Assembly: GCF_052425735.1 (NCBI RefSeq)
Contig: NC_135758.1
Span: 31,868,001 to 31,932,000 of the forward strand
Direction: 5' to 3'
Source of the DNA: Oculina patagonica
Taxonomy: Eukaryota
DNA: 64,000 bases
Positions 33 to 4,803 of this stretch are shown piece after piece. Under the pieces are notes generated by a model, which was not told the DNA's origin, did no database searches, and saw only the letters and a list, made by a program, of their open reading frames with translations. The position numbers and the translations under genes were made by a program. Every line of letters begins with the position of its first letter. Positions within the stretch are counted from its first letter, which is position 1.

Positions 33-3000
33 CTCTTCATCCATTCCACCCCAGAAATTGGAATAGGCAGCCTTCCCACCAAACACTTCAATCATTGGTG
101 CAATAACAGTCCTGAAATTAAGCAAGTAAATGTAATACAAAAATGAGCAGAGCATTAACTGCACTAGACAAAGGCCAAGTTAAGCCACATAACACCCATG
201 TGTAACGTACTTGGGTTACTGAGTCTGAACAATGTGTTGTTCCAGAAAATGCCCATACCCCCACCATGGAAGGTTTTGGTTGTACCCATGCACCTCCACC
301 CTTTACCCCTTTGGAATTCTGTCTGAGCTCCATACTTTCTTTTAAGGGGGGTCCTTCTTAACTACAGATCTAGAGCAGTTGCTAAGGAATTGCTCAAGGT
401 GTTTTTTGGTGGCAAGCTATTTTGGAGTGTTCGGCAACGCTTAACAGTGAGTTTTTGGTGGGGAGGACAACTGCATTGAAAAAATTGATATTGCATGCGC
501 GTAACTAGTGCCAGTCCCAAACCATGCGCAAGAATTTAAAATCCCTAAAACTTTTGAGAGAAAAGGAAAGTACCAATTTTTTTCAAAGAATTAGAGAAAA
601 CACATCCTTCTTCATAATCCTTCATATGGAATTACCATTTACATGTAAGAATGAAGCGCTATTGAATAAAGCCTGAAAATACAAGTCTTTATTACGCCAT
701 AACTTTAATAATAATGTGAATTTCCTAAAAACCATATGAAGCATTAAGCACGTGGACATTCTTTATCTGTTGGCATTGATTTTAATTTTCAGATCTATAA
801 GCCCTTTCAGTTTTAGGGTTTTTCCTATTCCGGTCACGTGACTTGTCAAATATGGCCGTGATTTGAATTTCTTGAAGGACTCGTCAAAAGAACAAAGTTG
901 TGCAAAAATCTTACCTTTAGGAGGTTTGGTTTCCAAAAAATGACCGTTGGAAATCTTTCTTAGCAACAAATTGGTAGTTAAGAAGGACCCCCCTTAAAAC
1001 ATTTGGCTTTCAAGCCCCCACCCAGCCCCAACCCCCCCTCCAAAAAAAAATTCAACGACCTTCCATTGGGTGGTGATGGAAATTTTAATTTCTTGGAATA
1101 AACCACATGGCTTCTCATTGAGACACTTTGTATAAGCTCAAAATTACTTGTATCTTAGTTATTACTTACTTTTTCTCCTCCATCAAATGTCTTAATGTCT
1201 TAGGATTGACTAAAAAGTTGTCACAATCCACAAACTGGAAGACAAAGAAAGATATATATAAACATCTTATTAACCAACTGCGAGGGCCGTACTGGAAGAA
1301 TATCGGTTTGAGGTCTTGACAGACAGTATGGACCAAGTTAAGCGCAGTGAGGTCAGTACAGAAAGGACTAAGGGCCGATACTCTCCCAAGCAAGCCTGGT
1401 TTTTCATACGAGTCTAGTTTGTTGGACTGGTGCAGGATAATTCAGCACAGTACCCTGTCCCCCTATACTTAGAAAATATCGGACCACAGTGGAGCAATCT
1501 GATTGGTTGTTTTTAGCTATTAGCTACCTCGATCATGAAAAAATATCATATCCATACCCACCAATAGAAGATCATTAGAAAGTCAGAAAGCGAGGAGGGA
1601 CAAGAGGTACAGCCGTTATCGTAACTTTGATCAAAATTGATATCTCACCAAAATTATAATATTTTGATTTTTTTGGGGTGGGAACAATATTTTTTTTTTT
1701 TTTTTTTTTTTTTTTCATTCCTTTTTTTCCAAAGCCCTTACTGACTTATCTTTTTACTTTTCTTTGAAGACATTACCTTTTGAACCCCCTTCCCCATCTC
1801 CCTTAAAATTTCTAATGACTTCCCTTGGGGTGGATATGATATTTATATATTTTCTAGATCCACTCATTTTGCAAATACCCAAACAAGAACTTGTTTCCCC
1901 TAAACACTAAATAAACATACAAATAAATAGTCAGCCCACTGTTTTCTTGCACTATCCAGAGCCCTTTGTCGAAGATACATCATCTGCCGATATCTGGTCT
2001 CTGTCCACTCCCCTGGACCTGCGGCCTCATCATACTGGCTGGGAGTGTTAGACACATTTATTAATACTCTGTGGTATAAATTTTTTACATTTTGAGTCCA
2101 TTCTTGTAGTATCTGTGATGTGTTGTCTTGATTATGGTCTGATCTGATCCTGTCAAAAAAACAAAAAGACAAACAAATTATTGAAGTTGTCGTTGTTTAA
2201 TTAGGGCAGTAATGTAATCCACTGAACAAATAGGTCACTATCAAGAGATAAGTTTTAAGAAAAGAAACATAGCTATCGGCAGGACAGTGATTTATCTGGT
2301 GTGCTGTGTTATACTAGCCTGAACCACACTTGCGGCCAATTTTTTCAGATGTCTCATCTTGGGAGCAGGGGACCAGAGAGAGACATTCAGGCTAGCCTTA
2401 TCCACAATTTGAACAAATGGGTCCTGAGTGTAATAAGCTTTCACTGTGCACTAGCAGTTGGTTTATTCATTCCTGGCTTCTCATTTCCTTTTTATAACAG
2501 TTTTAAGTACGCAAGTCAGAATCAGAACAAAGAGGCAAATATTTGAAAAACAAACGGGAACTTGTCAAGGCAAGCAAGATTATTAACCAAGAGCTGACAT
2601 TAAAAGCCCCCCCCCCCCCTCAGCTTAACTTGTGAATATTCGTCGCTGTGACAGAAAAGCCAACTTGTTTACAGCGGCTGCTAGCAGTAGAAAACCAGTA
2701 AACAGTAAATATACCCCATAAACGAAGGGTTCTTTACATATCTTTCTTTAAAATCCTTGGAGGACGTTGATCTCAAGCCGGGATTTCGAGGTAGGATACA
2801 CGAGTGATCGACTGGGAGGATTTCGTAAAATTACAGAGTTGTCGTCCCACTGGAGACAATGAAATGTATAAAGCCGAAGTTCTTTAACGAAGGGGTTAGA
2901 AAGAAAACGAAAGGGCCTGAAATTTACTGAGTTCGTACTGAGAAATTAAAAAAAAGGAAACCCACAACAAGGGGTTTCCAAATGGTCACCCATCCAAGTA

Positions 3001-4803
3001 GTAACCCCGCCCAACAGGGCTTAACTTTGGCGATCAGACGAGAACCAGTGCTTTCCTTGTGGTATCAGTCCCAGACGAAGCAAAGACTTACAAGAGTCAT
3101 GCAAATAAAGAACAGAAACATCTGGTTATAATGGATCTTTTGAACGATGATTTAAGTGGATTTACACTGTTATAAGCTGATTTACGCGCTCTTCCTGATA
3201 TCACATGGAAAACAACGGTTCTCATCCGATCGCCAAAGTTAAGCCCTGTTGGGCAAGGTTAGTACTTGGATGGGTGACCATCTGGAAACCCCTTGTTGTG
3301 GATTTCCTTTTTTCTTAATTTCTCAGTACAAACTCAGTAAATTTCAGGCCCTTTCGTTTTCTTTCTAACGGCTTCGTTAGAGTACTTTGGCTTTATACGT
3401 TCATTGTCTCGAGCGGGACAAGAACTCTGTAAAATAATGAAATCCTCCCTCGATCACTCGAGTATCCTTCGAAGGATTAAGAAGATATATAAAGAACCCT
3501 TCGTCTATGGGTTATATTTACTGTTTTCTGGTTTTCTACTGCTAGCAGCCGCTGTAAACAAGTTGGCTTTTCTGTCACAGCGACGAATATTCACAAGTTA
3601 AATTACCTGAATCATTCTTAGCGACATTCTTAGCCTTAATCGTCGTCTGAGAAAGTTAGCAGTTATAATTTTCCTTTTGTTTGTTTGTTTTTGTTGCTGT
3701 TGTTGCTTCTTTGTTTAATGTTTCACAATTCCGCGTTTTAGAATATTCCATCATTCCACGTTTTAGGATTTTCCATCATTCCGCGTTTTAGGATATTCCG
3801 CCATTCCGCTGTGCCGTTCTGCCATTCAGCCATTCCGCCGAATAGGGTCACCCGTATCATTTGGGTGACTCATGACTGCTTTCTAATGCTTTACCTAATA
3901 ACCAAGTCTTTTTCTCATTGTTTTTTCTAAGGAAGAAGTCATTTTAACTTCAAGGACCAGTTTTAATCTTGTTTCTCTATGAAACTATCAAATAAATCAC
4001 AAATATCTGAAAAGAAAATCCATTTATTGTAATATCCCCTCAGCCCCCCAGCTATAGCTTGCATAAATAAACCAAGTCTTATTTGTGCATAATTTAATAA
4101 GAAAGTAATCAAATCTTTTCCAGAACGACAACAGAGATGATTGAGAAAACTGTTTCACTGCGCAGTTGAGAAACAGTCCTCCCAAAGTTCGGGAATCTTA
4201 GGAATGCAATGACACGTTGGCAGGGCTACGAAAATTTTATATACTTGCACATACATCGATCTTACCGGATATCAAACAGTCATCGTGACTATTTTGAACA
4301 GCATAGGCCTTTTTTACGATTCGATTACGCTCTATTTCACGTTGAGATCGTGCCGTTTTTGATAGCAACTTACTGACAATTCAGACAAAACAACTTTTAT
4401 ACAAATGTGTCAAGTACTTCTGTGCGAATTCATTCAGTCTACAAAGAGTTCGTTGTGAGCATGCTTGTTTACTAATACTAAGTAAATATAAAGGTTCTCT
4501 GTGCTTGGCACAATTAAAACTCAAAGCTGTATTAATACAGAACAATAAATTTTACCAGCAAGGAGCACTTACCAGACAGATATTCGATTTTTAGGGTAAT
4601 CCAAATTCTCGATGTATCCGAGCCAATTGGGAAGTAGATGAGCCGCATTGCGAGCTATGATTGCTAATAAAACGCTGGGTTCTCTCACTGCGGACTCTTT
4701 AGAAAGATTATAAACTACATCAGAGACCTTTGAGTCCGCTGTTGATATCTGTAAACTTATAAATAAAAGAGTAATCAAGAGTAAATTACAACAACGCAGC
4801 CAT
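33..4803 (-). CDS. COLGALT1: Procollagen galactosyltransferase (COLGALT/GLT25 family), first four exons; gene continues off the left edge
   Basis: Exons 4803-4573, 2149-1921, 1234-1170 and 111-33 join in phase: EPSVLLAIIARNAAHLLPNWLGYIENLDYPKNRISVW/IRSDHNQDNT...WADYLF/FVDCDNFLVNPKTL...K/TVIAPM...AAYSNFWGGMDEE. This matches the COLGALT N-terminal GT-A domain with its DxD motif. The first ATG is 1 nt out of frame (see findings). Confidence 0.9.
346..993. mobile_element. Non-autonomous DNA transposon (Kolobok-like), TTAA target site
   Basis: TTAA|GGGGGGTCCTTCTTAACTAC ... GTAGTTAAGAAGGACCCCCC|TTAA; no coding capacity. Confidence 0.8.
2960..3076 (-). pseudogene. 5S rRNA-derived sequence (left arm)
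   Basis: Reverse complement reads ATACCAC...GGTTCTCGTCTGATCGCCAAAGTTAAGC...TACTTGGATGGGTGACC (box A and box C), followed by a T-run. Confidence 0.85.
3187..3303 (+). pseudogene. 5S rRNA-derived sequence (right arm)
   Basis: GGTTCTCATCCGATCGCCAAAGTTAAGC...GGTTAGTACTTGGATGGGTGACC followed by a T-run. Confidence 0.85.
3729..3840. repeat. ~25-bp minisatellite (TTCCGCGTTTTAGGATATTCCATCA-like)
   Basis: Three clear copies plus degenerate ones. Confidence 0.6.

Follow-up and report, generated by a model that had tools for sequence, protein, structure and literature searches.

A left-truncated foldback transposon with a pair of 5S rRNA-derived units in a COLGALT1-like gene of the coral Oculina patagonica

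The stretch of DNA analysed here (the window) comprises 64,000 nucleotides of contig NC_135758.1 of the coral Oculina patagonica. Near its start, two exon matches to procollagen galactosyltransferase 1 lie on the minus strand at 4569-4778 and 1900-2172, and a transposon copy lies between them at 2625-3853, on the plus strand. The copy therefore falls within the first coding intron of a COLGALT1-like gene (Table 1). It is a dead, truncated insertion of a foldback-type element, which aligns to positions 261-1498 of the 1498-bp family consensus with 97.1% identity. Two 5S rRNA-derived units face outwards from a spacer in the middle of the copy and each of them stops directly at a T-run. The insertion is also seen in a DNA run with the same species label (X1), in which contigs cross both junctions at single-copy depth and the length of the poly-C varies.

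Table 1. Parts of the transposon copy and neighbouring exons of the COLGALT1-like gene, in window coordinates
Feature	Coordinates	Strand	Basis
Foldback transposon copy, left-truncated	2625..3853	+	Genome matches and consensus alignment
Filler at the truncation junction, C13 then TCAGC (18 nt), in place of the lost left 260 bp	2607..2624		Flank unlike that of all other copies
Surviving left arm, pairs with 3314-3601	2625..2947		Inverted repeats
T8 run directly 3' of the left 5S unit	2948..2955	-	Sequence and alignment
Left 5S rRNA-derived unit	2956..3072	-	RF00001, 71.7 bits, model 1-120; ~76% identical to host 5S gene
Central spacer, 115 bp, the asymmetric middle of the palindrome; TATA-like A/T-rich stretches precede each unit	3073..3187		Sequence
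Right 5S rRNA-derived unit	3188..3307	+	RF00001, 71.2 bits, model 1-120
T6 run directly 3' of the right 5S unit	3308..3313	+	Sequence and alignment
Right arm, containing the internal TTAA (3598-3601) and low-complexity (TTG)n sequence	3314..3717		Sequence
Subterminal tandem repeats, periods 25 nt and 8 nt; candidate transposase-binding repeats	3718..3837		Direct-repeat families in the window; Tandem Repeats Finder (TRF) on intact copy L002
True right terminus CCGAATAGGGTCACCC	3838..3853	-	Pattern match G000:C1:31871838-31871853; terminus alignment
Presumed right copy of the 8-bp target-site duplication (TSD), GTATCATT	3854..3861		Position inferred from TSDs of other copies; left copy lost with the truncation
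Second coding exon of the COLGALT1-like gene, residues ~59-134	1900..2172	-	Match to procollagen galactosyltransferase 1 (PDB phmmer, E=3e-19)
First coding exon of the COLGALT1-like gene, encoding an N-terminus that resembles a signal peptide, followed by residues ~15-58	4569..4778	-	PDB phmmer, E=6e-8

Measured inwards from 2625 and 3601, the inverted repeat of the window copy is perfect over 74 bp and 97% complementary across 120 nt, whereas the inner arm segments are 84-90% complementary. The original prediction, made from the sequence of the window alone, had put the perfect repeat at 70 bp and the spacer at ~110 bp. It had also described the diverged inner arms, a full-length, outward-facing 5S-like sequence at the inner end of each arm with box A and box C retained, and the T-run immediately after each unit. 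All of this agrees with our measurements. The predicted RNA fold of 2625-3601 is a single long hairpin with a minimum free energy of -668 kcal/mol, versus -241 +/- 9 kcal/mol in shuffled sequences. With the two exon matches on its flanks, the intronic foldback copy would thus form a ~1 kb hairpin in the COLGALT1-like pre-mRNA, as had been anticipated. The boundaries of the element had to be revised, however. The tetranucleotide TTAA, taken for the target site at both ends, does occupy 2625-2628 and 3598-3601, but it is an internal palindromic tetranucleotide of each arm, located ~260 bp inside the termini, and not a TSD. Instead of ending at 2625 and 3601, the copy continues to 3853 on the right and is cut at consensus position 261, next to the 18-nt filler, on the left.

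The true ends are evident from other copies. Our search of the organism's own 529-Mb genome, with the 977 bases of 2625-3601 as a query, yielded at least 12 full-length matches at 88-96% identity as well as shorter variants. In 11 other copies, the homology extends ~260 bp past both 2625 and 3601. Intact copies are ~1.5 kb long, start with GGGTGACCCTATTCGG and finish with CCGAATAGGGTCACCC, its reverse complement; the termini are thus GGGTGACCC...GGGTCACCC, that is, GGG...CCC. Immediately outside the termini there are 8-bp direct repeats of varied sequence, perfect in nine and near-perfect in four of the 13 non-embedded copies, and none of them is TTAA. One further perfect 8-bp TSD is found in L058. 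The piggyBac assignment favoured by the original prediction, under which the element is of the piggyBac foldback type and bounded by TTAA at 2625 and 3601, is consequently highly improbable. It can draw on the TTAA at both coordinates and on the inverted repeat of the window copy, which stops there on the left. But that stop is the truncation with its filler, the copy runs on to 3853 on the right, and the 11 other copies are homologous beyond both TTAAs, as far as GGG...CCC termini with 8-bp TSDs. In addition, the piggyBac superfamily has 5'-CC...GG-3' termini (PMC10045372), unlike those found here.

The 16-nt terminus has 366 matches in the genome, against six for the reversed control pattern. 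Terminus pairing and co-location were assessed on the first 100 of these 366 matches, and all statements below on listed termini refer to this set. Among them, 56 have no listed partner, so truncated copies like the one in the window are common, and pairs spaced by just 202 and 264 bp exist as well. Almost every terminus continues into the subterminal repeats of the family: the terminus followed by a non-family base gave just 16 matches, almost all of which differ from the usual subterminal sequence by a single base (mostly G-to-A). In the consensus, the terminal 8-nt and 25-nt tandem repeats are followed by a low-complexity stretch, the outer 360 bp of the arms being 100% symmetric. Positions 361-480 form an asymmetric patch, and further inward the arms are again 90-100% symmetric, up to and including nt 31-128 of the 5S units. 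The centre, in which the 5'-most ~30 nt of either 5S unit flank the spacer, is asymmetric. In the intact copy L002, TRF detects the 25-nt period (3.3 copies, 94% matches) in both arms, and the 8-nt repeats are present in both arms as well.

Inverted arms, two 5S units and the 115-bp spacer fill the ~1.5 kb of the intact copies, so that a transposase gene could not be accommodated. Terminal inverted repeats (TIRs), TSDs of fixed length, many dispersed copies and the lack of a transposase gene are the marks of a non-autonomous class II (TIR) element. The arms, which take up ~700 of the 1498 bp, their symmetry and the subterminal repeats are those of a foldback element. Besides the intact form, there are a left-arm deletion form of ~1.26-1.35 kb, a 961-bp form and a tandem-array form; the 5S pair is kept in all four structural variants despite large deletions in the arms. 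The divergent pair is found in 30 of the 31 element-bearing loci examined. A 34-nt signature of the 3' part of the element's 5S sequence has 68 matches in the genome (none for the control). Of these, 40 form 20 divergent pairs ~300 bp apart; the remainder are mostly half-elements that have a terminus at the appropriate distance. These counts bear on a further alternative, namely that the locus arose from two independent head-to-head insertions of 5S-derived short interspersed elements (SINEs) or from a local, non-mobile palindromic duplication of a 5S pseudogene. Although 5S-derived SINEs do occur in other animals (PMC10946416), this scenario is hardly credible given that the same pair, spacer and arms recur dozens of times across many chromosomes, that TSDs flank only the outer termini, and that each unit stops at its T-run, without a SINE body or tail. 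The chance insertion of two SINEs, which a count of paired and solo arms was expected to reveal, is therefore not borne out, and the idea of a DNA transposon carrying paired 5S units holds for a multi-copy, non-coding family with TSDs. Taken together, the best explanation, to which we assign a probability of roughly 80%, is that 2625-3853 represents a copy, now dead and truncated on its left, of a ~1.5 kb non-coding foldback family of cut-and-paste transposons that carry a pair of units derived from the host 5S gene. Such a family would presumably be moved by a transposase supplied in trans, which would recognise the termini and the subterminal repeats.

The insertion in the COLGALT1-like gene is absent from at least one related genome. 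In run X4 of organism B, which is labelled as a different species, a contig joins positions 2606 and 3858 and thereby omits exactly the filler and the element (1251 bases); it lacks the GTAT that follows the terminus in the window copy. The depth of this empty-site contig (52.7, versus 33-100 in the flanks) is similar to single-copy, and the same run carries the family at high copy number. Of the empty TTAA sites that the original prediction proposed to look for, the empty site was thus found at this very locus and the TTAA target was not.

Several copies lie within other repeats or next to one another. Three copies of a foldback variant (L021-L023, G000:C6:38484604-38490408) follow each other with a period of ~2.52 kb, the element being part of a tandem array. 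Four copies (L003:823-3159, L004, L007 and L008, at G000:C8:1.215 Mb, C13:34.558 Mb, C1:12.319 Mb and C10:5.644 Mb, respectively) are located exactly in the centre of a ~840-bp palindromic miniature inverted-repeat transposable element (MITE) of another family, the nesting resulting in a 2.3-kb foldback with 8-bp TSDs of its own. The flanks at the inner junctions of these nested copies are inverted complements (AAATGAAA / TTTCATTT) rather than a direct duplication, and the same holds for the short variant in L060 and L061 (TTTGCTGGTA / TACCAGCAAA). This suggests that an arm together with its flank was copied onto the opposite side (palindromisation). The outer MITE family, with termini GGAGTTTGATCGTAGCACGAG, has 142 terminus matches (none for the control), mostly in pairs ~810-855 bp apart. 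Two of its terminus pairs are spaced by ~7.65 kb (G000:C1:19409327-19416997 and G000:C7:27022716-27030355) and may represent autonomous elements of that family. Just outside the short foldback copy in L061 (G000:C6:28.745 Mb) there is a 543-aa open frame (L061:1417-3048) matching PF20691 (TET-associated glycosyltransferase, E=6e-10).

Both 5S-derived units are full-length matches to Rfam family RF00001, scoring 71.7 and 71.2 bits where the gathering score is 38 and the host 5S gene reaches 117 bits. The host has two types of 5S gene. The first resides in a 2005-bp tandem unit shared with the U1 and U2 small nuclear RNA (snRNA) genes (L025, G000:C1:45.94 Mb; contig C1187), and 5S is likewise linked to U1/U2 snRNA genes in Acropora pruinosa (PMC8167085). 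The second, with 82-83% identity, occurs as a 519-bp array of its own on a different chromosome (L045, G000:C10:9.46 Mb). The units of the element resemble the first type, with 76-78% overall identity, and the similarity to the host array is limited to nt 11-119 of the 5S sequence and 9 nt of the trailer with TTCC and the T-run. The simplest history would be that this module was captured once from the host gene and then doubled as the palindrome formed. Compared with the host gene, there is one change in box A, none in the intermediate element and two in box C, with box coordinates as in the Xenopus gene. Variants specific to the element include GC->AT at nt 93-94 and a 2-nt deletion near nt 100. 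Helix I has lost its 5' strand, and its pairs are non-standard or deleted in the covariance-model alignment. Whereas the host 5S RNA is predicted to fold into the classic three-way junction (-48.4 kcal/mol), the predicted fold of the right unit is not 5S-like and the left unit is closed by a short helix only; a folding comparison of the 5S variants had been proposed with the original prediction, and this is its outcome. Since helix I is lost and no host-like fold is predicted, the units are not ribosomal 5S genes. They do look like intact type-1 promoter and terminator cassettes of RNA polymerase III (Pol III). Upstream of both units lie A/T-rich stretches, about as far away as a TTTAAAT stretch lies from the host gene, and these could act as promoter elements.

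Sequence variation among the copies provides a weak hint of constraint on the internal control region. Variants common to at least two copies occupy one of 79 clean control-region columns versus 29 of 289 arm columns (odds ratio 0.11, Fisher p=0.009), the counts being small and the copies related. Such shared variants arose while the lineage was still propagating. Private substitutions, which postdate insertion, affect 0.47% of control-region positions and 0.87% of arm positions (p=0.21); the lack of a significant difference is expected if single copies decay neutrally. In every variant, the control region has stayed closer to the host gene than has the rest of the unit (83-90% versus 74-82% identity). 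A naive count had indicated strong conservation of the 5S units and was dropped, because shared ancestry of the copies and misaligned positions around gaps exaggerate it.

Alongside the small counts and the relatedness of the copies behind the shared-variant contrast, the following results weigh against the reading of the window copy as part of a trans-mobilised family with a 5S pair. An autonomous partner sharing the termini, which the original prediction had called for, was not found among the listed termini, a search that is incomplete. Five long-spaced terminus pairs (L055-L059) have no transposase domain in their open reading frames (ORFs). An element in L056 (L056:101-2025, G000:C5:5.118 Mb) has the same termini and subterminal repeats, a 7/8 TSD and ~1.45 kb of unrelated interior without 5S; together with the terminus pairs 202 and 264 bp apart, it suggests that the 5S units are dispensable for mobilisation. 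Finally, among the listed runs containing the element, none is recorded as RNA and six are guessed to be so; in the two of these that were compared, coverage of the element follows DNA copy number, and both consist of contigs, which give no transcript starts or ends.

The longest ORF of L058 had no match in an atlas look-up, and no transposase domain was found in the ORFs of longer or neighbouring copies. Three 'one-arm' matches (L060-L062) were followed as leads to a partner and proved to be the short 961-bp variant embedded in another inverted repeat. In L057, a reverse-transcriptase fragment (PF00078, L057:2088-2450) lies in a 4.8-kb foldback copy with a 7/8 TSD and represents a nested retroelement. 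Part of the L056 element is duplicated, along with its right flank, 7.7 kb downstream.

As to the superfamily, the length of the TSD is compatible with more than one assignment. Drosophila Foldback (FB) elements and most Mutator-like elements (MULEs) have TSDs of 9 bp, and the 8-bp TSD also fits hAT and P elements. In the case of hAT, the very long TIRs of the coral element differ from the short TIRs of that superfamily, and none of the 135 matches to the hAT domain PF05699 (150 of 386 candidates scored) lies inside long-spaced terminus pairs. According to published values, the TSD is 8 bp in Merlin and 4-10 bp in MuDR/IS256 (PMC10045372), and 8 bp falls within the latter range without being diagnostic. 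Neither the 44 Merlin/IS1595 matches (PF12762) nor those to the hAT and MULE domains are co-located with listed termini or with the 5S signature. Membership in the Mutator superfamily (MuDR/Foldback/Rehavkus-like), with movement by a coral MULE transposase, is a tentative proposal that we regard as rather doubtful. Long inverted arms, subterminal tandem repeats and G-rich termini speak for it, as do the TSD range, the placement of Rehavkus under MuDR (PMC4455052) and the presence of MULE genes with long open frames in the genome. However, the 18 matches to the MULE domain PF10551 are all more than 10 kb away from listed termini and 5S-signature matches, the TSD is not the 9 bp usual for FB and most MULEs, and its length suits Merlin, hAT and P.

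The 5S units may be inert passengers, that is, a host gene fragment picked up in the manner of Pack-MULEs and doubled by the palindrome, without Pol III activity or benefit; we consider this to have an even chance. The missing first 10 nt and helix I, the poor folding of the units, relatives with the same termini and no 5S, private substitutions about as frequent in the 5S units as in the arms, and the lack of RNA support from the contig-level runs guessed to be RNA are all consistent with it. Difficult to accommodate are the superior preservation of the control region relative to the host gene, its near freedom from lineage-shared variants, the T-run terminator retained in both units and the persistence of the pair in every deletion variant. 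Our best guess from the sequence is that the units may still bind TFIIIA and TFIIIC and be weakly transcribed by Pol III into ~120-nt RNAs. That the family thereby scatters type-1 Pol III promoters by DNA transposition is possible, although we put it somewhat short of an even bet. The strongest version, in which the 5S modules would be working Pol III/TFIIIA-TFIIIC cassettes kept by selection in a cut-and-paste transposon, we think unlikely on present sequence evidence. Under this version, the family would be the first class II counterpart of Cassandra and SINE3, and dozens of ectopic type-1 promoters (68 signature matches) would have been seeded in outward-facing pairs. If so, the outward-facing 5S pairs could possibly keep the chromatin of the element open or mark the element for the transposition machinery.

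Structurally, the coral family belongs with the non-autonomous class II elements of the foldback type, and its cargo is a captured fragment of a host gene. In function, it resembles Cassandra, having two 5S-promoter modules per copy but no direct long terminal repeats (LTRs), a likeness that holds if the modules act as promoters. Like Cassandra of plants and Ajax of nemerteans, it is non-autonomous and carries a 5S-derived internal-promoter module in both terminal repeats, so that two modules spread with every copy. Cassandra also forms tandem arrays (PMC10946416), as does the coral family in L021-L023. Cassandra and Ajax are LTR retroelements (terminal-repeat retrotransposons in miniature, TRIMs) with direct repeats that move via RNA, whereas the coral family has inverted repeats, TIRs and 8-bp TSDs and moves via DNA; moreover, its 5S units are found at the inner ends of the arms and not near the termini. 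SINE3 and other 5S-headed SINEs share with it a 5S-derived head with box A, intermediate element and box C. Unlike the coral units, which end at a T-run, lie in inverted pairs and have no TSDs of their own, SINEs possess a body, a tail that is related to long interspersed elements (LINEs) or consists of simple repeats, and variable TSDs.

Among DNA transposons, Drosophila FB and Rehavkus have similarly long inverted arms, subterminal tandem repeats, mostly no coding capacity and the potential to form hairpins. They differ in that the coral TSD is 8 bp, compared with 9 bp for FB, and no MuDR-type partner was found among the listed termini. We know of no FB element with cargo derived from a Pol III gene. 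Pack-MULEs are likewise non-autonomous DNA transposons with a host gene fragment between TIRs; the coral cargo, by contrast, derives from a Pol III gene with an internal promoter and a terminator, is present as a symmetric pair and could stay active without a flanking promoter. Pokey and mPok, piggyBac elements of Daphnia, are DNA transposons with rDNA-derived sequence too, but contain pieces of the intergenic spacer (IGS) of the large rDNA, target TTAA in the 28S gene and have no 5S promoter. The CMITEs of Acropora (PMC2872659) are non-autonomous coral DNA elements with an unusually conserved internal region and tandem arrays; they measure ~100 bp and have TTAA TSDs as well as piggyBac-like TIRs, so that in size, ends and TSD they bear no relation to the family described here.

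All transposable element families with 5S-promoter-derived sequence tabulated in a 2024 review are retroelements, namely SINE3, OS, MEG, Ped-1, HaSE3, 5S-Sauria, Cassandra and Ajax, and Pokey, with its IGS pieces, is the sole DNA transposon with rDNA-derived sequence in Table 2 of that review (PMC10946416). The 2024 paper by Kojima on Ajax mentions no DNA transposon, and the terminus string of the coral family occurs in no relevant paper of the literature searched. So far, 5S promoters have thus been described in elements that move via RNA (SINE3-type SINEs and the Cassandra and Ajax TRIMs). Copying of these elements begins with transcription by Pol III, a step on which a DNA transposon does not depend. 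The conserved pair of modules in the coral family may therefore be a clean example of the capture of a Pol III gene, or it may point to another use of TFIIIA/TFIIIC, such as in chromatin, insulation or targeting. Dozens of dispersed 5S-like loci carry a risk of confusion with 5S genes in coral genome annotation and in fluorescence in situ hybridisation, and copies of the family put ~1 kb hairpins into introns. The interest of these observations lies with the family rather than with the truncated copy in the window.

Elsewhere in the window, two acidic low-complexity open frames are found upstream of the COLGALT1-like gene on the minus strand (6152-7123, 323 aa, and 7536-8297, 253 aa), and neither has a Pfam match. 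Three tRNA-like Rfam matches, each scoring 36.3 bits, lie at 21279-21950. Two of them are 263 bp apart on the minus strand and the third is located ~340 bp further on the plus strand; the trio represents a tRNA-derived repeat in a tandem and inverted arrangement. One more tRNA match is present at 56717-56783.

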